Shown here: positions 2,955 through 25,930 of the stretch, piece after piece
How the letters are laid out: every line of letters starts with the position of its first letter
How positions within the stretch are numbered: position 1 is the first letter of the stretch
Source of the DNA: Paramicrosporidium saccamoebae KSL3
Taxonomy: Eukaryota > Fungi > Cryptomycota
NCBI GenBank assembly: GCA_002794465.1
Contig: MTSL01000048.1
Location: 1 to 32,000, forward strand
DNA length: 32,000 nt
Direction: 5' to 3'
Notes under the pieces: model-generated
What the model was told of the DNA's origin: nothing
The model's database searches: none
The model's input: only the letters and a program-made list of their open reading frames with translations
Translations under genes and position numbers: made by a program

Positions 2955-3842
2955 TTACAGAGCCAGAGCGAGGGGAACAAGAACTGCAGCAGCAACCATC
3001 GCAGCGGCAGCCTTGACGTTCTCGGCGCCATTCCCTTCCTTCTTGGCGGCACCTTGTACCTTTGGCTTGGGTGGCTCAACCTTGGGCATCTTCTTCTTTT
3101 CGTCCTTCTTCTTCTCATCTTCCTTCTTCTCAACGGGAGCGGGGGGAGGAGTGGGCTGGACGGCGAATGCCATGCTGTTGCCACCCATATCGTTGGCCAT
3201 GCTGGGTCCAGCCAGAGGCAAGCCTTGTCCAGAAACGCTAATGTAGACATCACCAGTCATCAGATTGGGGTCGTTGGGGACGGCCCAGGTGTAGCCCTTC
3301 AGGGTGGAGCTAACAGTGGCAATCTCGAGGAGCGGAGTTGGGTTACCAACACGGTAAACGGCAATATCGACCATGGCGGGGTAGTTGCTAGTGATGGGGA
3401 AGTCCCACTTGATCTGGCAGTTGGTGCCAATGGCACATGGGCAGTCCTTGTTGGGGGATGTAACAAGGAAGGTGTTTACGGCATTGGGGACATCATTGAG
3501 AATGGTGAATGTGCTTGATAGACCCTCAGAGGCACCGGGTTGGGGCGCTTGGGATCCCCAGACACGCAGACAGTACCCAGCGGCAGTCTTGAGCTCAGAG
3601 GGGATCTTCCAGGAGTACTTTCCAGCCTCGCCAGGAACACCGGACGCGATCATCAACGGGAATTGGAGCACGTCGGGGTACATATCGACCAAGTCAATGT
3701 TCACGAACCCAGTGTTGGAGCCATCCCACTGGATGTTCATCACATCACCAGCACTGTAGGTCATGTTTCCGGGGGAGATCACCTTGGGGTTGCCTGCAGC
3801 GACCACTGCGAGAAATAGGGAGGCGGCGAGGGAAAAGATCAT
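2955..3842 (-). CDS. Predicted GPI-anchored surface protein with two Kre9/Knh1-N-terminal-like Ig domains and a Lys/Glu/Pro-rich stalk
   Basis: ATG at 3842 gives signal peptide MIFSLAASLFLAVVAA. Two similar modules (VISPG..YSAGDVMNIQWD and VTSPN..CAIGTNCQIKWD, each followed by YxWxVP/IP), a PTPPPAP-KKEDEKKKDEKKK stalk, then NGA plus hydrophobic tail AAAAMVAAAVLVPLALAL. 295 aa. Confidence 0.8.
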   Translation of the reverse strand: MIFSLAASLFLAVVAAGNPKVISPGNMTYSAGDVMNIQWDGSNTGFVNIDLVDMYPDVLQFPLMIASGVPGEAGKYSWKIPSELKTAAGYCLRVWGSQAPQPGASEGLSSTFTILNDVPNAVNTFLVTSPNKDCPCAIGTNCQIKWDFPITSNYPAMVDIAVYRVGNPTPLLEIATVSSTLKGYTWAVPNDPNLMTGDVYISVSGQGLPLAGPSMANDMGGNSMAFAVQPTPPPAPVEKKEDEKKKDEKKKMPKVEPPKPKVQGAAKKEGNGAENVKAAAAMVAAAVLVPLALAL

Positions 3843-3978
3843 GGTTCGACTCTGTCGGTTTGTTGACGCTGGTAATGCAATGCCACAACAAAGCCCTTTT
3901 ATAGCCCGCCAATGTTTGGATAGAGCACTTGCTCTGTTGTCATGGTGCTCTTCCCGATGGTAGCCAATCAGGACGTCC
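3843..3978. promoter_or_regulatory. Probable bidirectional promoter (136 bp) between the GPI protein and dephospho-CoA kinase
   Basis: Head-to-head ATGs at 3842 (-) and 3979 (+). Inferred from geometry only. Confidence 0.5.
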
Positions 3979-4656
3979 ATGCAACTTATTGGATTAACGG
4001 GCGGCATCGCAACGGGGAAGACGACAGCCTCTGCCTATTTACAGCAACAGAATATTCCAGTAATTGATGCAGATTTGTTGTCGAGGCAGGCCTTGGAGCC
4101 CGGGACCAGTGGATATCAAAAGGCGTGTCGGCTGTTCCCTCAGGCTGTGGACAAAGGTGGCCTACTGAATAGAGGGAAGCTTGGAGACATCATATTCAAT
4201 GACGTGGCGGCACGGAAGAAATTGGAAGGAATAATTCACCCAGAAGTACAGTCTGCCATTGTCAAGACAATCATCTGGTATTGGTTTCGAGGCTATTGTC
4301 GAGTGGTCTTGGATATTCCACTCTTGTTTGAAACTCGAATGGACCGCTGGATGTCCTACACAGTCGTTATTACTGTATCCGGAGAGTTGCAGATAGGAAG
4401 ACTGATCGAGCGAAGTCATTTGACGCTGGAGCAGGCCGAGAGTCGGATTGCCGCTCAAATGCCAATCAATACAAAGTGTAAACTGGCTGATGTAGTCATC
4501 CAGAATGATGGCGACATTGGGGCTCTATACAAGCTTCTTGACGTGGCGGTTGTCCGTAGGAGGCCGAATTTTCTAATCCACACAGTCTTATTGTATGCAG
4601 CCCCGCTACTGGGATCTTTGGCATTGATTGTCGTAGGCCTACTCAAGGTCTTTTAA
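3979..4656 (+). CDS. CAB5: Dephospho-CoA kinase (CAB5/DCAKD family)
   Basis: IGLTGGIATGKTT P-loop, VIDAD, LNRGKLGDIIF, LEGIIHP, VVLDIPLLFE, RIAAQMP, ADVVIQNDG; C-terminal hydrophobic anchor as in DCAKD. 225 aa. Confidence 0.96.
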   Translation: MQLIGLTGGIATGKTTASAYLQQQNIPVIDADLLSRQALEPGTSGYQKACRLFPQAVDKGGLLNRGKLGDIIFNDVAARKKLEGIIHPEVQSAIVKTIIWYWFRGYCRVVLDIPLLFETRMDRWMSYTVVITVSGELQIGRLIERSHLTLEQAESRIAAQMPINTKCKLADVVIQNDGDIGALYKLLDVAVVRRRPNFLIHTVLLYAAPLLGSLALIVVGLLKVF

Positions 4657-9709: not shown

Positions 9710-11119
9710 TCAGCAGCCGCCACGACGACATCTACAACGGCTCTTGCCACAACCACAACGACAGCGACGAGGTCGTCTTCTTACTCTGAGATTGCGACTC
9801 TGAGATGAGGAAGACCGAGAGACACTCCAACTCTGACTGCCACTCACACTTCTTCTCTTCCTCTTCTCTATCACCCTCTTCACATCAAACGCCACTGTGC
9901 TGCTCTCCGTGCACTGATTCACTGTTATATGGCGCACATGGTGACGATGCTTTCGCGGCTTCACCTTTATGAGCTTGCGATGACGACTACGCTTCTCCTT
10001 GGAGATCTTGCGGGATTTGCAGGCACGACGACGGGAACGAGAATAAGAGTCGCTGTAGCCACGCTTGTGGTGGTGCTTACCGGTGGCATGACGAGAAGAA
10101 TAACGGGAGGGATGACGTGCTTCTTTAACCGATGGCTTGTCGCTGTCCTTAATAACAGGCTTGTGGATATCAATGCGGGTTTCCTTACAGGTCGGCTTCC
10201 GAGACTTGTGGCATGCAGACTTTTTAGACAGAGTTGGCTTTCGGGTGTCACTTCGGGTCTTTTGGCGAGTGTCATGAGTCTTGTGGCGGATGTCATGAGT
10301 CTTTTGACGAGTTCCTTGACGAGTGTCTTGGCGAGTATCTTGACGAGCGTCTCTCCTTGTTGACACGGTATTCTTGGACTTTGGATGCTGACGACCATGG
10401 CCAGAATTACTCTTGCTGCAGCTCGAACTTGAAGATTTGGAACTGCTGGATGAGCTGCTTGAACTACTTGAGCTGCTTTGAAGCTTCAATGTCTTTCGAG
10501 CATGATGGACATGAGGCTTCCCCGGATGCTGAATCTGGGCGTGCACATGTGGCTTCGTAATCTTTGGCTTTCGCATCAGCTTCTTAGGAGCCTTTGGTTT
10601 GCTCACCTTGTAAGTCGTGACAGTTGTGCTTGAGCCCGAAGTGCTACAAGTGTTCGGAGTCGAAGAATCAGAACTGGGACATTTGTTGATTTGCTCGAGT
10701 AGCTTGTCGGCTGTCTTTGTAATCTTGTTAGTATCGACAGGCACCTTTTGCTTTGACTTTTGCTGCTTGCGCTTGTCAGTCTTGGAAGTCGGTTTCCTAA
10801 CTTGGGTATGCTTGCGTCGCTTACCATGGTCACTGCTACTAGAGTCTGAAGAACTGCTGCTCTCACTCCCACTGCTGCTACTGCTGCTTCTGGAAGAGAC
10901 GTGATGAGGCTTTTTCTTGTGCTGGCGATGCGTCTCTTTTTGTTGCTGCTTGCGTACCTTTTCTTTCTTGGCACGGCGATCCCCAATGACCTTTTGCACG
11001 GCAGCTACAGTCTCCGATCCCATTTCTTCGTGTCGTCTCAAAGATTTTGGACGTATCTTGCCCTCATTTAGCGTGGCCAAGACGATGGGCACCGTCAGCA
11101 AGCACAGAACCTTGTACAT
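9710..11119 (-). CDS. Secreted Ser/Lys/Arg/His-rich low-complexity orphan protein with Cys/Arg-rich C-terminus
   Basis: 469-aa ATG ORF. Signal-peptide-like MYKVLCLLTVPIVLA, poly-Ser runs, DTRQ-type repeats, ending RRRPRRCRCGCGKSRCRCRRGGC*. No family recognised. Confidence 0.78.
   Translation of the reverse strand: MYKVLCLLTVPIVLATLNEGKIRPKSLRRHEEMGSETVAAVQKVIGDRRAKKEKVRKQQQKETHRQHKKKPHHVSSRSSSSSSGSESSSSSDSSSSDHGKRRKHTQVRKPTSKTDKRKQQKSKQKVPVDTNKITKTADKLLEQINKCPSSDSSTPNTCSTSGSSTTVTTYKVSKPKAPKKLMRKPKITKPHVHAQIQHPGKPHVHHARKTLKLQSSSSSSSSSSSSSKSSSSSCSKSNSGHGRQHPKSKNTVSTRRDARQDTRQDTRQGTRQKTHDIRHKTHDTRQKTRSDTRKPTLSKKSACHKSRKPTCKETRIDIHKPVIKDSDKPSVKEARHPSRYSSRHATGKHHHKRGYSDSYSRSRRRACKSRKISKEKRSRHRKLIKVKPRKHRHHVRHITVNQCTESSTVAFDVKRVIEKRKRRSVSGSQSWSVSRSSSSQSRNLRVRRRPRRCRCGCGKSRCRCRRGGC
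10235..10355 (-). repeat. Coding minisatellite (12-bp DTRQ-type units, then KTHDxRx units)
   Basis: Translation DARQDTRQDTRQGTRQKTHDIRHKTHDTRQKTRSDTRK; repeated CTCGTCAAG / ACTCATGACA on the minus strand. Confidence 0.85.
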
Positions 11120-22783: not shown

Positions 22784-23753
22784 TCAATATACCCGGTCAA
22801 ACCCTCGTTCTGGGGGCTGCAGCCAATTTTGATTGTCATACTGACAATTTCCCTCAATGACATGGAATGTGTATGCATTTCGGGGATCCTCAGAGAGATT
22901 AGGGCCGCTTTGATGCACAACGGATCCATGAATCAGGACTAGCGTTCCCTTTGGAATCTCCAACTGAACGAATCGCTTATCTTCAAAGGTGTGTTGGGAT
23001 CCTTGAAAGCAAGTCTCAGTCCCAGCATCGTTCCTTACTAATCGGCTCGTTATTGGATACTCTGACATCAATGAACCAACCCGAGAATCTACCTTTGTGT
23101 GATCCGGGAATAAAGGATAGGGTCCCATTTTTAGCAGTGCAATCGTCCAAGGCAAACCAGAATCCTATCGCACTATTTGGCTCCGTGTACAGAAATGTAG
23201 AATCTTGATGGGGCACCACCTCGCCACCGATTCGGGGATTCTACACATGAATTTGCACCATCCAACTTGCCTTGAAAATGATCATGCTTTGCAGTATCAC
23301 TGGATGCTCAAATCCAAGCTGTCGAAATATCTCAATCAGGGAACTCGAGTGAGTAAAGTTGCGAAAAACTGAATCCTTTAAGTGCAATCCTACAAATTCC
23401 CATCATTATAGCCGACTCGTACCATGGCCAATCTTGTTGAGAGCTCGCTCTTTGGGAACCACAAGTTCACCTTTGTCATTCAATGCACCGGCTTCATAAA
23501 AGAACGAAATGTTGTCGCCACTGGCCAGAAAATATTGACTGTGCCGCTGTTGGCTGTTCTTTGTTACAAATCGAGTTACAGGATGGGACTCGGGCTTTAA
23601 TTGCTCGGCGAGCATCTGGGCACGATTTCTTAATTGTTGAATCTGCTCTTCCGAAAGAAAGTTTTTGATCAAAAGATAACCATCATTATTGAACTAGGTA
23701 TTTTAGTCAATTCCCGAAATTACTGCTTCCAAGTCCAAACCAGCAACGGGCAT
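22784..23753 (-). CDS. PHYHD1: Phytanoyl-CoA dioxygenase family Fe(II)/2OG enzyme (PHYHD1-like)
   Basis: complement join(22784-23061,23093-23240,23271-23389,23423-23693,23724-23753), 281 aa; introns 31, 30 (GC-AG), 33 and 30 nt. Motifs [27 protein letters not shown]|[42 protein letters not shown]. Confidence 0.94.
23241..23270 (-). other. 30-nt GC-AG spliceosomal intron (AAG|GCAAGT...GTGTAG|AAT)
   Basis: Removal deletes an in-frame TAG and restores the conserved IFK-xPxIGGEV motif; the donor matches the strong consensus typical of GC donors. Confidence 0.8.
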
Positions 23754-23805
23754 TATGTTGATGATGCTATGGATTTTTAATGCATTTGTTATTTGCGGAT
23801 TATCT

Positions 23806-24753
23806 TTATGGCTTGAGGCCGATGTGGAATGGGCATTTGGACGGGTCGCCTTTAACGTGGTCTTTGTCGGGAATTTTGTATCCCATCTTTTTAATTCGAT
23901 CTACATCGAAACCGCGCGACTTGAAAAATTGCTCCTGATCCCGCTTCTTTGAGTTACGAGATTTAGTAGGCTTTTTGCTCTGGGAACGAGGCTGTTTCTT
24001 GCGGCCGTGGTTGTTGTGGCGGCGGGGGTTTTTTACGTCCTGAGGCGTGCTCCAATAAACTCTGCCTTTTGGCTGGGATTTTCGAGCAGTTCGAGCAATT
24101 CGAGTAGGCCGTGCAGTTCGAGTGGTTCGAGTAGACTGAGTGGACTGAGTAGACAAAGTCCTCGGGCCTCTACTCTTGTGCTTATTCTTACGATCACGGC
24201 CACGCACATGTCTACGCCCATGTCCATGTCTACGTCCATGCCTATGTCCACGCCTATGTCCATGCTTGCGCTTACTCTTACGGCCACAGGAATCTGAAGA
24301 GGAGGCTGAAGAGGAGGAATAACTATAGCTCTGCATCTCTCGTAATAGATCAGCATTCTCTTTCTTTGCCAAAAATGGACATTGTTTCGCATCGCCACCA
24401 AATCCATGATGATTTATAGCGTGGGCGGCTGCCCGAGATGCTATTTTCACTGTACCTTGAGGTTTCTTGACACTTGCGCCGCTGCCAATTTCGTCATCAT
24501 TTGCAGATGAAACTTTCTTATCGTACCCAAATGGACATTTTCCCCCCGCTGGTTTGGGCTCCTTTACATCGCTATCACCATACCCAAACGGACATTTGGG
24601 CTTTTCGGGAGTTTTGGCTGGCTCCTTTGAACCTACAGCCGGAGTCGACTGTTCACGGGAATTTCGGTATGCGTGAATGGTACCTGCGAGCACCAGCAGG
24701 AATGCAAGACCGCTGATTGCAACAGTCCAGAAGCGACGACCAAGAGATTTCAT
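23806..24753 (-). CDS. Secreted or signal-anchored orphan protein with four K/Q-C-P-F motifs and a His/Arg-rich segment
   Basis: ATG at 24753; hydrophobic N-terminus FWTVAISGLAFLLVLAGTIHA. KCPFG x2, QCPFL, KCPFH; SSSSASSSDSC followed by KHGHRRGHRHGRRHGHGRRH. 315 aa. Confidence 0.8.
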   Translation of the reverse strand: MKSLGRRFWTVAISGLAFLLVLAGTIHAYRNSREQSTPAVGSKEPAKTPEKPKCPFGYGDSDVKEPKPAGGKCPFGYDKKVSSANDDEIGSGASVKKPQGTVKIASRAAAHAINHHGFGGDAKQCPFLAKKENADLLREMQSYSYSSSSASSSDSCGRKSKRKHGHRRGHRHGRRHGHGRRHVRGRDRKNKHKSRGPRTLSTQSTQSTRTTRTARPTRIARTARKSQPKGRVYWSTPQDVKNPRRHNNHGRKKQPRSQSKKPTKSRNSKKRDQEQFFKSRGFDVDRIKKMGYKIPDKDHVKGDPSKCPFHIGLKP

Positions 24754-24876
24754 TCTGTGTGGCGTAATTCTCGCCTCGTTACCTACTTTCAATTTCCGCC
24801 GTCTGGGCCAATCAAAACTTGCAAAAAGAATCGAGTTGTAGTGGAAAATGCGCCGGGGCTAGCGCACATCTTCCTG
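24754..24876. promoter_or_regulatory. Probable bidirectional promoter (123 bp) between the CPF-motif gene and BRL1/BRR6
   Basis: Head-to-head ATGs at 24753 (-) and 24877 (+). Inferred from geometry. Confidence 0.45.
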
Positions 24877-25930
24877 ATGTTAGCGTCAGAGCGAGGGAAA
24901 GAATCTCCAATGGATCTTGACTCGCCACCGTCAGTGTGGTGCAATTCGCCCGTTCCAACAACCTCTCCGGACAAGCCGGTTACTCCAAGTACATGATAAT
25001 CATGTTTTCCAATCAGTAGGGGCTGTTTTTGGAGCGCCTACCTCCTCGCCCGGGAGCAGCGGTGGGCCGCATTCCCCCACAAAGTCAATGCCCAGAGTTA
25101 GACGGCTTGGATTGTTTGGAGGCTCGCCTTCCAGGATTAGGAGCAGTCCACTGGCACGACGAAGCAGAGTAGAAGGCGACTCGCCTCTCTCAGAGACAAA
25201 CTCGACGGTAATTCGCTGCAGTGTTATAGCTTTTAGAAGAAGAAACGGGCATTAGTCGAAAGAGAAGACAACAACCGACACTTGTATCTGCCACTCGTCA
25301 TTATGGGGTATCAAGTCGTAGTGTCACGCTGACTATTCGTAGATACCTGCAAGTTGCCTTCAATGTGATTTTGATATCTGGAGTGCTCTATTTTTTGATG
25401 CAATTCTTCCTAACTGTACGACGTGACGTCCAAATTAAGGTGGATGAGCAGCTTTCGACCATCCTCGCCGAAATATCCCAGTGTTCGAAACAATATGTGG
25501 AGAACCGGTGTAGTCCAGACTTGAGGGTTCCAGCCATGGAAAAGGCCTGCATCGTGTGGGAAAGTTGCATGAAACGAGATCCATCTGTTATCGGACGGGC
25601 GAAGCTATCGGCTGAGACCTTTGCAGAAATAATCAACGGCTTCATCGAACCCATCTCCTACAAAACAATGGTACCAGCCCAGTGGATCAGTGGTTGCTGA
25701 CATTGTAGATATTCATCTTGGCGGCACTGTTTGGGACAATATTCCTATCAAACTATGCCTTTTCAATGGCGAGGAATAGGGTGAGCTCGGGATACGCTCC
25801 AATGTTGCGGGATCAACAAACCGTTTTTGCGTCTGGACTTTACACCCCAGTACATACAGTATCCTTATCTGCGTTGTCTCTAATATAATAGACTCCAGGG
25901 AAACAAAAGGCCCTAATGTCTCTTCAATAA
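24877..25930 (+). CDS. BRL1: Nuclear envelope / NPC biogenesis protein, Brl1/Brr6 family
   Basis: Introns 24989-25016 (or -25019), 25208-25236, 25308-25342, 25671-25708 and probably 25859-25891. Gives ESPMD N-terminus, G|YLQVAFNV TM, four-Cys loop QCSKQYVENRC..VPAMEKAC..WESCMKRDP, AETFAEIINGFIEPISYKTM|IFIL..SNYAF. The last exon is less certain. Confidence 0.88.

Follow-up and report, generated by a model that had tools for sequence, protein, structure and literature searches.

A Paramicrosporidium gene for a protein with an N-terminal hydrophobic helix and conserved Cys-Pro motifs that may bind heme

Introduction

Heme regulatory motif (HRM, or CP-motif) proteins are a motif class and not a homologous family. 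The motifs of heme oxygenase-2 (HO-2) read K-C-P-F. Cytochrome c heme lyase (CCHL/HCCS), a membrane-associated mitochondrial protein of fungi and animals, has a disordered N-terminus with one to four CP[V/M]xH-type motifs; this protein is reviewed in PMC7140478. In HRMs, heme is bound via the Cys of the Cys-Pro dipeptide, often with a distal His (PMC8808069), and the motif is given as 'CPF/L' in ALAS (PMC6344999). CP motifs that bind heme transiently are located mostly in loops between secondary-structure elements and give a 5-coordinate complex near 370 nm (PMC10377097). For Bach1/Bach2 and Hap1-type factors, each CP motif is an independent heme site according to studies cited in PMC10377097. 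The HO-2 motifs bind Fe(III)-heme through the Cys thiolate (PMC2742820; PMC8808069) and, near the membrane anchor, provide a thiol/disulfide switch at -200 mV (PMC2742820).

Here we describe a gene from Paramicrosporidium saccamoebae that encodes several motifs of this type. The gene lies in a window of 32,000 nucleotides (GenBank contig MTSL01000048.1, positions 1 to 32,000), which is the whole stretch of DNA analyzed. P. saccamoebae is a parasite of the amoeba nucleus, and its lineage stands at the base of the Microsporidia, with a host interface that is barely known. According to the genome paper, the electron transport chain is complete (PMC5701793), and a complete respiratory chain implies that the parasite needs heme. 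A literature search on heme metabolism in Paramicrosporidium, Rozella and the Microsporidia returned nothing relevant.

Results

The ORF at 23806..24753 on the minus strand is a single-exon, complete CDS of 315 aa with a TAA stop codon at 23806-23808. Its ATG is the start common to all full-length orthologs, which also share the position of the stop codon. Comparison with the closest relative, L007, gave a dN/dS of 0.17 at a dS of ~0.97. Opposite-strand ORFs in 24007-24407 were considered and rejected: they are mirror images of low-complexity repeats, and dN/dS and the ortholog alignments favor the minus-strand frame. A profile search of 1.84 billion representative proteins returned only five true relatives; P0007, a repeat protein matching the hydrophobic helix only, was discarded as spurious. 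Scanning metagenome contigs with alignment A1 gave 348 pattern matches, none of which was a relative. The same flanking genes are found beside the CP-motif gene in four of the five relatives, on contigs of uncultured organisms. The same divergent Brr6-like gene adjoins three full-length orthologs (L002, L003/L004 and L006), and PhyH or RRM lies downstream in L001, L003/L004 and L006; L007 has none of the shared neighbor genes. As judged from these sequence comparisons, 23806-24753 on the minus strand is a real, separate gene of P. saccamoebae that is restricted to the Paramicrosporidium lineage.

In GenBank, the ORF is part of a longer gene model, P0001 (PSACC_00511), to which it is 99% identical and of which it forms the N-terminal 299 aa. 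Under the public annotation, the ORF would form the N-terminal extension in a 545-aa dioxygenase of the PhyH family, with a 160-nt intron removing its last 16 codons and stop. P0001 joins ...KIPDKDH to the PhyH part, and the proposed junctions do carry GT and AG. However, the removed segment, VKGDPSKCPFHIGLKP, is conserved together with its stop codon in L001, L002, L007 and P0005, and the PhyH gene has an ATG of its own, with a short first exon and intron that are conserved in L001. This true start lies outside the CP-motif protein, at 23694..23753 (minus strand): an ATG at 23751-23753, 52 nt from the stop of the CP-motif gene, opens an exon of 10 residues, which is followed by a 30-nt GT..AG intron at 23694-23723. 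The layout is repeated in L001 as MGPTNILDLES, GTAAG..ATAG and then FHRDGYLVVENF. In L006 and L007 the CP gene is present and PhyH is absent downstream, while independent gene callers kept the two genes apart in L001, L003 and L004. A Pfam scan found no PhyH (PF05721) match in the ORF. We consider the public annotation extremely improbable. By this evidence PSACC_00511 wrongly joins the CP-motif ORF to the PhyH dioxygenase downstream of it, and two gene models should replace it; the fusion drops the last 16 aa of the ORF, CP motif 4 included.

The protein begins with a positively charged segment, MKSLGRR (aa 1-7), and a hydrophobic helix, FWTVAISGLAFLLVLAGTIH (aa 8-27), which together span 24673..24753 (minus strand). 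The best 19-residue Kyte-Doolittle mean in the helix is 2.09, and AlphaFold2 places a helix at 4-35 with pLDDT values of 92-96. These values confirm the hydrophobic N-terminal helix that an earlier, sequence-only reading of the locus had claimed as a signal or anchor helix. The pattern GRRxWT..I[ST] is kept in all five full-length orthologs, as is the succession of a small residue and Tyr behind the helix. The segment could be a signal anchor or a long signal peptide, and a possible cleavage site lies after the helix, between IHA and Y. The charges flanking the helix are +3 on the N-terminal and +1 on the C-terminal side, and the N-terminal side is more positive in most orthologs too. Because the N-terminal flank is the more positive one, an N-in/C-out orientation is predicted, in which the C-terminal part is probably exported.

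Four CP motifs are present in the P. saccamoebae protein, all encoded on the minus strand. CP motif 1, KCPFGYG (aa 53-59, 24577..24597; KCPFG at aa 53-57, nt 24583-24597), reads KCPFAQG in L001 and KCPFRMG in L002. CP motif 2, KCPFGYD (aa 72-78, 24520..24540; KCPFG at aa 72-76, nt 24526-24540), is the most widely conserved copy, with the consensus GKCPFG[YFH]DK, and was found in the window sequence, L001, L002, P0005 and P0006. CP motif 3 is encoded with a conserved lead-in as HGFGGDAKQCPFLAKK (aa 116-131, 24361..24408; QCPFL at aa 124-128, nt 24370-24384), and its counterparts are KQCPFLARK in P0004, SKCPYAKG in L001 and SKCPFFQS in L002. CP motif 4, KCPFH (aa 306-310, 23824-23838), stands at the end of a C-terminal module. 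An extra CP motif, TKCPYLMS, has been gained in L001. Checked against the ORF translation, the coordinates first assigned to the motifs are correct to within one codon. The claim made with them, that four of the five Cys sit in CPF, is true: the Cys are at 54, 73, 125, 156 and 307, and the one outside, Cys156, is not conserved among orthologs.

The number of CP motifs varies, from four in the P. saccamoebae protein to 5, 4, 3 and 1 in full-length orthologs. The six sequences hold 19 CP motifs. The residue before Cys is K in 16 of the 19, Q in two and G in one, and the residue after Pro is F in 14, H in two, Y in two and L in one. Five of the six sequences have a CP motif 5-18 residues before their C-terminus; at this distance from the end, CaaX prenylation of a terminal Cys is ruled out. 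Identity among the orthologs, spacers included, falls to 25%. The expectation that homologs would keep CPF while their spacers diverge is thus borne out across the 19 motifs of the six orthologous sequences. In the background provided by the 18 other window ORFs of at least 150 aa (7327 aa, 151 Cys), there are 13 CP, two CP[FYH] and no [KR]CP[hydrophobic]. At least four CP arose in only 10 of 200,000 shuffles of the protein, and the chance of four CPF from composition is, as a rough estimate, ~1e-10. This pattern suggests that the K-C-P-[F/Y/H] motif is the selected feature.

Only Cys156 and the two CC pairs of P0005 break the rule that Cys outside the N-terminal helix belong to CP motifs. The number of Cys beyond the helix (5, 5, 4, 7 and 1 per ortholog) is variable and often odd, which disfavors fixed structural intramolecular disulfides. 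A varying copy number would be expected of independent ligand-binding motifs and not of a single fixed metal center or fixed disulfide pairs.

Three further regions are conserved. A non-Cys block, IGSGASVKKPQGTVKIASRAAAHA (aa 89-112, 24418..24489, minus strand), has invariant I89, G90, G92-K96 and V102-I104 in alignment A1; AlphaFold2 gives a weak helix at 106-114, and P0005 has two KSCC pairs in place of the block. A Ser-rich patch, SYSYSSSSASSSDS (aa 142-155, 24289..24330, minus strand), is shared by the window sequence, P0004, L001 and L002. The C-terminal module, SRGFDVDRIKKMGYKIPDKDHVKGDPSKCPFHIGLKP (aa 279-315, 23809..23919, minus strand), ends in CP motif 4 and is conserved in P0004, L002 and P0005, with the core GFDVDxIKKMGYKIP; the KCPFH end is also found in L001. 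This module is the sole part other than the helix with AlphaFold2 pLDDT values of 70-84. Values are below 50 around CP motifs 1-3 and 57-73 around CP motif 4, and beyond the helix and this modest module the protein is predicted to be largely disordered. It is extremely basic, with a pI of ~11; the net charge is ~+48 for the chain and +40 for aa 161-300.

Two tracts are lineage-specific. The His/Arg tract KHGHRRGHRHGRRHGHGRRH (aa 163-182, nt 24208-24267, minus strand) coincides with an 18-nt tandem repeat of 3.2 copies at 24200..24267 (TRF rows 24200-24262 and 24207-24264), and the Thr/Arg tract TQSTQSTRTTRTARPTRIARTAR (aa 202-224, 24081..24154, minus strand) with a 9-nt tandem repeat (TRF). 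The His/Arg tract is missing from every other ortholog. P0004/L007, which is 74% identical to the P. saccamoebae protein, has neither tract. The His-rich tract singled out by the sequence-only reading is therefore present, but it does not stand as a functional element: a tandem-repeat expansion unique to this genome cannot carry the conserved function of the family. The protein therefore does not qualify as a His-rich metal- or heme-binding protein of the HRG or HRP2 kind. Conspicuous as it is, the tract reflects repeat slippage rather than a conserved feature.

Domain and structure searches returned no family, in agreement with the initial impression that none could be recognized. A Pfam-A scan of the ORF at E up to 10 gave only a chance match to FAM110_C (E = 1), with no match to CFEM or other curated heme-binding domains. 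A PDB sequence search with the family profile gave only chance antibody matches to the GASVK block (E > 0.1), and a PDB search with two motif-bearing peptides gave nothing.

Discussion

The four [K/Q]CPF motifs consist of Cys-Pro followed by a hydrophobic or aromatic residue, they are conserved among orthologs amid divergence, and they lie in segments that AlphaFold2 pLDDT marks as flexible or disordered. These are features of the HRM class, although assignment to that class by sequence alone carries a substantial false-positive rate. Heme binding by the protein is plausible, and the best reading, which we hold tentatively, is a disordered protein, anchored or exported, that carries modular thiolate motifs of the heme-regulatory type. 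Heme ligation, the membrane involved and the side of it that the chain faces, and a role in taking up heme from the host nucleus are points that we infer. In the proposed mechanism, the N-terminal helix would hold the protein in the membrane, or lead to its export, and the basic disordered chain would bear the K-C-P-[F/Y/H] sequences as short linear motifs. These would work independently, one to five per protein, with one usually behind the small C-terminal module. At each motif the Cys thiolate would ligate Fe(III)-heme and the Pro would direct the backbone off the porphyrin; the Lys before the Cys and the aromatic residue after the Pro would pack on the ring and propionates. The sixth ligand may come from a nearby His or Tyr (KCPFH, KCPFGY, KCPHY). 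Labile heme could then be reversibly captured, buffered or sensed at the membrane, and thiol oxidation would switch heme binding off, as in HO-2. A multivalent 'sponge' is not universal in the family, since P0006 has a single motif.

There are points against heme binding. Were the chain to be exported through the ER, as the flanking charges suggest, its thiols would tend to oxidize; the ER lumen is non-reducing, and to our knowledge the well-studied HRMs all function in reducing compartments. Heme binding therefore stays tenable only for a chain exposed to the cytosol or to the host nucleoplasm, which would be reducing. It accounts for neither the extreme basicity nor the Ser-rich patch nor the C-terminal module. 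An extended version, which we regard as a long shot, has the wall-less intranuclear stage display the protein on its surface, the chain extending into a reducing host nucleoplasm and the CP array drawing labile host heme as a hemophore-like receptor; the polybasic chain might also serve as a tether to host chromatin. We know of no description, in any eukaryotic parasite, of a heme receptor made solely of heme-regulatory motifs. Heme binding by HRMs also need not mean scavenging, because mutation of the HRM Cys left heme buffering by HO-2 unchanged (PMC8808069).

Several other functions could be considered for a protein of this composition. It could be a structural protein of the spore wall or polar filament, with a cleaved signal peptide, a basic Ser-rich chain (possibly O-mannosylated) outside the cell and lone Cys in intermolecular disulfides, a linkage reported in polar tube proteins of Microsporidia. 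Among these, PTP2 is a basic protein that is rich in Lys and contains Cys; polar tubes can be dissolved by reducing agents. The hydrophobic N-terminal segment with a conserved small residue and Tyr offers a potential signal-peptidase site, odd and variable Cys numbers suit intermolecular over intramolecular disulfides, and the protein is fast-evolving, low-complexity and lineage-restricted. In addition, the spores of P. saccamoebae possess a polar filament, yet homology pointed to no protein of this filament, the authors' HMM searches of the proteome having found no PTP/SWP (PMC5701793). However, cross-linking leaves the invariable Pro and aromatic residue after Cys, and the near-constant Lys before it, unexplained. 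The ORF has no Pfam match to a polar-tube or spore-wall family at E up to 10, the GRRxWT..I[ST] helix sequence kept in distant orthologs is more typical of a retained anchor, and P0006 has one Cys outside the helix. We consider a spore or filament function unlikely.

An unlikely alternative in our judgment is that the exported or surface chain, at ~+48 and with NLS- or nucleolar-like Lys/Arg clusters, binds host nucleic acids or chromatin in the amoeba nucleus; the associated proposal, that KCPF serves as a docking or redox-sensitive site for a host or parasite partner and not for heme, is unlikely to the same degree. The high pI and the charge of aa 161-300 agree with nucleic-acid binding, and basic tracts rich in Arg, Lys and His occur in every ortholog. 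Inside its host's nucleus the parasite grows as a naked protoplast (PMC5701793), and in a second window ORF, 9710-11119, a signal-like segment is likewise joined to a body that is polybasic and Ser-rich. Secretion and nucleic-acid binding are candidate properties only, however. It is the CP motifs and the helix that are conserved, whereas the sequence of the basic tracts is not, and the helix, if a conserved anchor, speaks against a freely diffusing effector. Binding or buffering of a metal (Zn, Cu, Ni or Fe-S) by Cys thiolates and His appears quite improbable. Cys and His are close in several motifs (KCPFH, KCPHY, KCPFGH), this genome has the His/Arg tract and P0005 has its two CC pairs, but the tract is a non-conserved tandem repeat, a Cys count ranging from 1 to 7 leaves no constant coordination set, and the usual motifs CxxC, CxC and MxCxxC are all absent. 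Furthermore, an invariant Pro after Cys is, as far as we know, no feature of thiolate metal sites save the heme-type CP motif. A RiPP precursor, with signal peptide, repeated cores and a neighboring dioxygenase, was considered and rejected: no repeated unit with a processing site surrounds the motifs, and L006 and L007 lack an adjacent PhyH.

Some consequences stand whatever the function. PSACC_00511 should be handled as two genes, and the family, being conserved and syntenic, can mark uncultured Paramicrosporidium-like organisms in metagenomes. If the motifs do bind heme, the protein would consist of little beyond a membrane helix and heme-regulatory motifs; in the cases known to us, enzymes or transcription factors carry HRMs as add-ons. 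The protein would then also be a concrete candidate for heme handling by an intranuclear parasite whose respiratory chain is complete.

Among described systems, PTP2 and the spore wall proteins of the Microsporidia, the sister lineage, are signal-bearing, and they resemble the P. saccamoebae protein in being basic, low-complexity and fast-evolving, with a few conserved Cys. They differ in that there is no detectable homology and PTP cysteines lie outside K-C-P-aromatic motifs. CCHL/HCCS has a Cyto_heme_lyase domain, which is absent here, and its motifs are CPV or CPM as compared to KCPF. The presequence HRMs of ALAS1/ALAS2 and the motif of IRP2 are nearly identical in local sequence: ALAS1 has ...KCPFLA..., comparable to KQCPFLAKK here, and IRP2 has CPFH, comparable to the C-terminal KCPFH. 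Those motifs control whether a folded enzyme or RNA-binding protein is imported or degraded, whereas nothing is attached here to regulate. Bach1/Bach2 and Hap1-type factors likewise spread several CP motifs across an intrinsically disordered region. However, those factors are soluble proteins that bind DNA in the nucleus and contain bZip or Zn-cluster domains; the P. saccamoebae protein has no such domain by Pfam and has an N-terminal membrane helix. HO-2 (Cys265-Pro, Cys282-Pro) is C-terminally tail-anchored, with cytosolic motifs and a folded catalytic heme-oxygenase domain, while the protein described here has its helix at the N-terminus, lacks a catalytic domain and sequence homology to HO-2, and is probably exported. 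What the two proteins have in common is the placement of Cys-Pro-aromatic motifs in a flexible segment beside a single membrane-spanning helix.

Layout and composition of the CP-motif protein

The CP-motif gene is an uninterrupted ORF of 315 codons, counted from its ATG, on the minus strand (window 23806-24753). Its product begins with a short, positively charged N-terminus (MKSLGRR), followed by a 20-residue hydrophobic segment (aa 8-27; best 19-residue Kyte-Doolittle mean, 2.09) and by the motifs KCPFGYG (aa 53-59), KCPFGYD (aa 72-78) and QCPFL (aa 124-128). Beyond these lie a Ser-rich patch (aa 142-155), a basic body (aa 161-300, net charge +40) with the His/Arg tract KHGHRRGHRHGRRHGHGRRH at aa 163-182, and a fourth motif, KCPFH (aa 306-310), 8 residues from the C-terminus. 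The pI of the whole protein is ~10.9. As a sequence-only reading had stated, four of the five cysteines lie in CPF. For comparison, among the 18 other window ORFs with 150 aa or more there are 151 Cys, 13 CP and two CP[FYH], and [KR]CP followed by a hydrophobic residue is absent from all 18. At least four CP were obtained in 10 of 200,000 shuffles of the CP-motif protein, and its motif density is far above chance.

Two further ORFs, both on the minus strand, were noted in the window. An orphan-looking 469-aa ORF (9710-11119) combines a signal-like hydrophobic segment at the N-terminus, long runs of Ser, a low-complexity body rich in Lys, Arg and His and, at the C-terminus, a Cys/Arg cluster (CRCGCGKSRCRCRRGGC); its sole Pfam match, SR-25, is weak and below threshold. 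There may be several exported proteins in this genome that are polybasic and disordered. A 350-aa ORF (2955-4007) joins a Kre9/KNH-like domain (E = 2e-13) to a stretch rich in Lys and Glu and has a hydrophobic C-terminus; it looks like a GPI-anchored surface or cell-wall protein.

The CP-motif gene is separate from its PhyH neighbour

The ORF is 99% identical to residues 1-299 of 'hypothetical protein PSACC_00511' of Paramicrosporidium saccamoebae, a parasite that lives inside the Saccamoeba nucleus and branches beside Microsporidia (PMC5701793). The PSACC_00511 model (545 aa) joins ...KIPDKDH to the downstream PhyH dioxygenase, dropping VKGDPSKCPFHIGLKP and a stop codon. Were this fusion correct, orthologs would not be expected to contradict it as they do, and we consider it very improbable. 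The dropped segment and the stop are both kept in three contigs of relatives (L001, L002 and L007). PhyH has its own ATG (23751-23753, minus strand), a ten-codon first exon and a 30-nt GT..AG first intron (23694-23723, minus strand), a layout that recurs in L001, and the gap between the two genes is 52 nt. In the window, L001, L003 and L004, the next gene after the CP-motif gene is PhyH. Two relatives have the CP-motif gene without it: in L006 (2491-3284) the RRM gene comes directly afterwards, and in L007 (540-1583) an unrelated minus-strand ORF does. On these grounds the fusion (23694-24753, minus strand) is an annotation error, with the CP-motif ORF and PhyH run together although they are two genes.

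Relatives, gene order and selection

When 5.8 billion proteins were searched by word index, two relatives emerged beyond the species' own entry. Three more, along with one spurious match, came from an exhaustive profile search against 1.84 billion cluster representatives. The distribution of the gene is very narrow. JGI metagenomes and Logan assemblies supplied the contigs that carry relatives. The window order of Brr6-like gene (divergent), CP-motif gene, PhyH, RRM protein and amidohydrolase recurs in L003, L004 and L006, the last without PhyH and with HECT, SPX-EXS and arginase genes following as well. L002 retains the upstream Brr6-like gene and L001 the downstream PhyH. Because flanking genes are kept, the genes of L001, L002, L003/L004 and L006 are positional orthologs from uncultured relatives. 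The sequence-closest relative, L007, is a short contig with none of those neighbours. Compared with L007 (74% identity, 170 aligned codons), dS was ~0.97 and dN/dS 0.17, falling to 0.12 within conserved blocks. The reading frame is under clear purifying selection and represents a real gene.

The window and the Logan contigs L003 (1-8227), L004 (1-7802) and L006 (1-13102), which come from uncultured organisms, share their gene order over more than 10 kb, through Brr6-like, PhyH, RRM, amidohydrolase, HECT, SPX-EXS and arginase genes; on the other side lie genes for an SRPK-like kinase and a GRIP protein. This conserved order shows that Paramicrosporidium-like genomes are present in the public read sets SRR12926096, SRR11844784, SRR11844739, SRR24693327 and DRR438482, as well as JGI samples 3300063079 and 3300042204. 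The divergent upstream neighbour (24754-25700, plus strand) encodes a Brr6-like protein of the nuclear envelope (PF10104, E = 5e-41) and contains at least one intron; no in-frame ATG was found near its conserved N-terminal coding region (24917-25255). The promoter region common to both genes is less than ~200 nt.

Conserved and variable elements

Overall identity to the CP-motif protein falls to 41% in L001 and L002 and to 25% in P0005 (an ORF on L003) and P0006 (another ortholog). The N-terminal helix and its flanks are conserved (GRRxWT..I[ST], with a small residue and then Tyr after the helix). The six sequences together contain 19 CP motifs; K occupies position -1 in 16 of them, Q in two and G in one, and Pro is followed by F in 14, H in two, Y in two and L in one. 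The homolog comparison proposed in the sequence-only reading thus came out in its favor, the motifs persisting while their surroundings diverge. Copy number varies: four in the window, five in L001 (with an additional TKCPYLMS), four in L002, three in P0005 and one, GKCPFGFDK, in P0006. A C-terminal module, GFDV[DE]xIKxxG[YF]xIP...G[DE]xxKCP[FH], is found in five of the six sequences, and a block IGxGASVK..VKI..RA and the Ser-rich patch are conserved in closer orthologs. Cysteines outside the helix number 5, 5, 4, 7 and 1 in the window protein, L001, L002, P0005 and P0006, and conservation does not extend to Cys156 of the window protein. Lys-Cys-Pro-aromatic is the only strictly selected chemistry.

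The His/Arg tract is encoded by an 18-nt tandem repeat of 3.2 copies (24207-24264) and a TQST/TRTAR tract by a 9-nt repeat (24081-24154). Both are absent from the 74%-identical relative and all others, and both are recent slippage products. The His-rich tract of the earlier reading is therefore present at its place but is no family feature. Basic composition is kept across orthologs; the particular tract sequences are not.

In P0005 (L003 5848-6666), two KSCC pairs (KSCCGAGKS and KSCCKNGS) replace the conserved VKIxxRAA block and the hydrophobic helix bears three Cys; metal binding or acylation is possible for these extra residues. Separately, a metagenome contig scan found 348 stretches encoding GKCP[FH]G[YGH]D-like or xxPKCPFxx-like peptides, with no relatives of the family among them, so the short motif is also present in other proteins.

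Predicted structure and topology

Pfam yielded no family for the ORF and the PDB no sequence relative, in keeping with the earlier failure to recognize one. An AlphaFold2 model built with the six-sequence alignment has a confident helix at aa 4-35 (pLDDT 92-96), two short helices around aa 270-310 (pLDDT 70-84) and 176 residues at pLDDT <50, including the surroundings of motifs 1-3. The best description of the protein is an intrinsically disordered chain, anchored or exported, with short linear motifs. Flank charges are +3 N-terminal to the helix versus +1 after it, and the N-terminal flank is also the more positive in most orthologs, for which the classical charge-difference rule predicts a cytoplasmic N-terminus and an exported remainder. 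Cleavage after IHA, ahead of the conserved Tyr, is possible; the helix looks more like a retained anchor than a cleaved signal, given its long h-region and its conserved sequence. An anchor in the mitochondrial outer membrane or the ER, with a cytosolic chain, is still conceivable.

Candidate functions of the CP motifs

By analogy, a modular, variable-copy Lys-Cys-Pro-aromatic element in a flexible chain bears the signature of a heme regulatory motif (HRM). The ALAS HRM is given as 'CPF/L' (PMC6344999), and HRMs bind heme via the Cys of Cys-Pro, often with a distal His (PMC8808069). CP motifs lie mostly in loops, form 5-coordinate complexes near 370 nm and can transfer heme to a nearby His (PMC10377097). 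In heme oxygenase-2 (HO-2), CP motifs adjoining the membrane anchor constitute a thiol/disulfide switch (-200 mV; PMC2742820). The selected motif and these precedents allow the tentative proposal, which we hold with some reserve, that the CP motifs would ligate heme reversibly, under redox gating. The Cys numbers, variable and odd, speak against a single metal centre or fixed intramolecular disulfides. Free thiols fit poorly with an exported location, and heme ligation would be workable only with the chain facing either the host nucleoplasm, in which this parasite grows as a naked protoplast (PMC5701793), or the cytosol of the parasite itself.

A disulfide cross-linked protein of the spore wall or polar filament is a rather unlikely alternative. 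It would suit the signal-like helix, the odd Cys numbers and the fast evolution, and polar filament proteins are not known in this species (PMC5701793), but it leaves the invariant Pro and aromatic residues unexplained. Somewhat less probable is a polybasic protein directed at the host, a reading in line with the charge and with life inside the nucleus. Metal binding seems improbable; a His tract that is not conserved and a Cys count that varies both weaken it.

Comparison with known systems

The conservation of the CP motif is striking and easily tested; the family is tiny and its heme function putative. If heme ligation is right, the protein would be a stand-alone anchored HRM array; if wrong, a lineage-specific disordered surface or spore protein. 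Homology to described families was not apparent in the Pfam and PDB sequence searches. The nearest functional analogues are HO-2, with its anchor-proximal HRMs, Bach1, Bach2 and Hap1, with CP-motif arrays in disordered regions, the CP motifs of mitochondrial heme lyases, and ALAS and IRP2, with CPF/L and CPFH motifs. Unlike all of these, the CP-motif protein has nothing else attached, neither an enzyme nor a DNA-binding domain.
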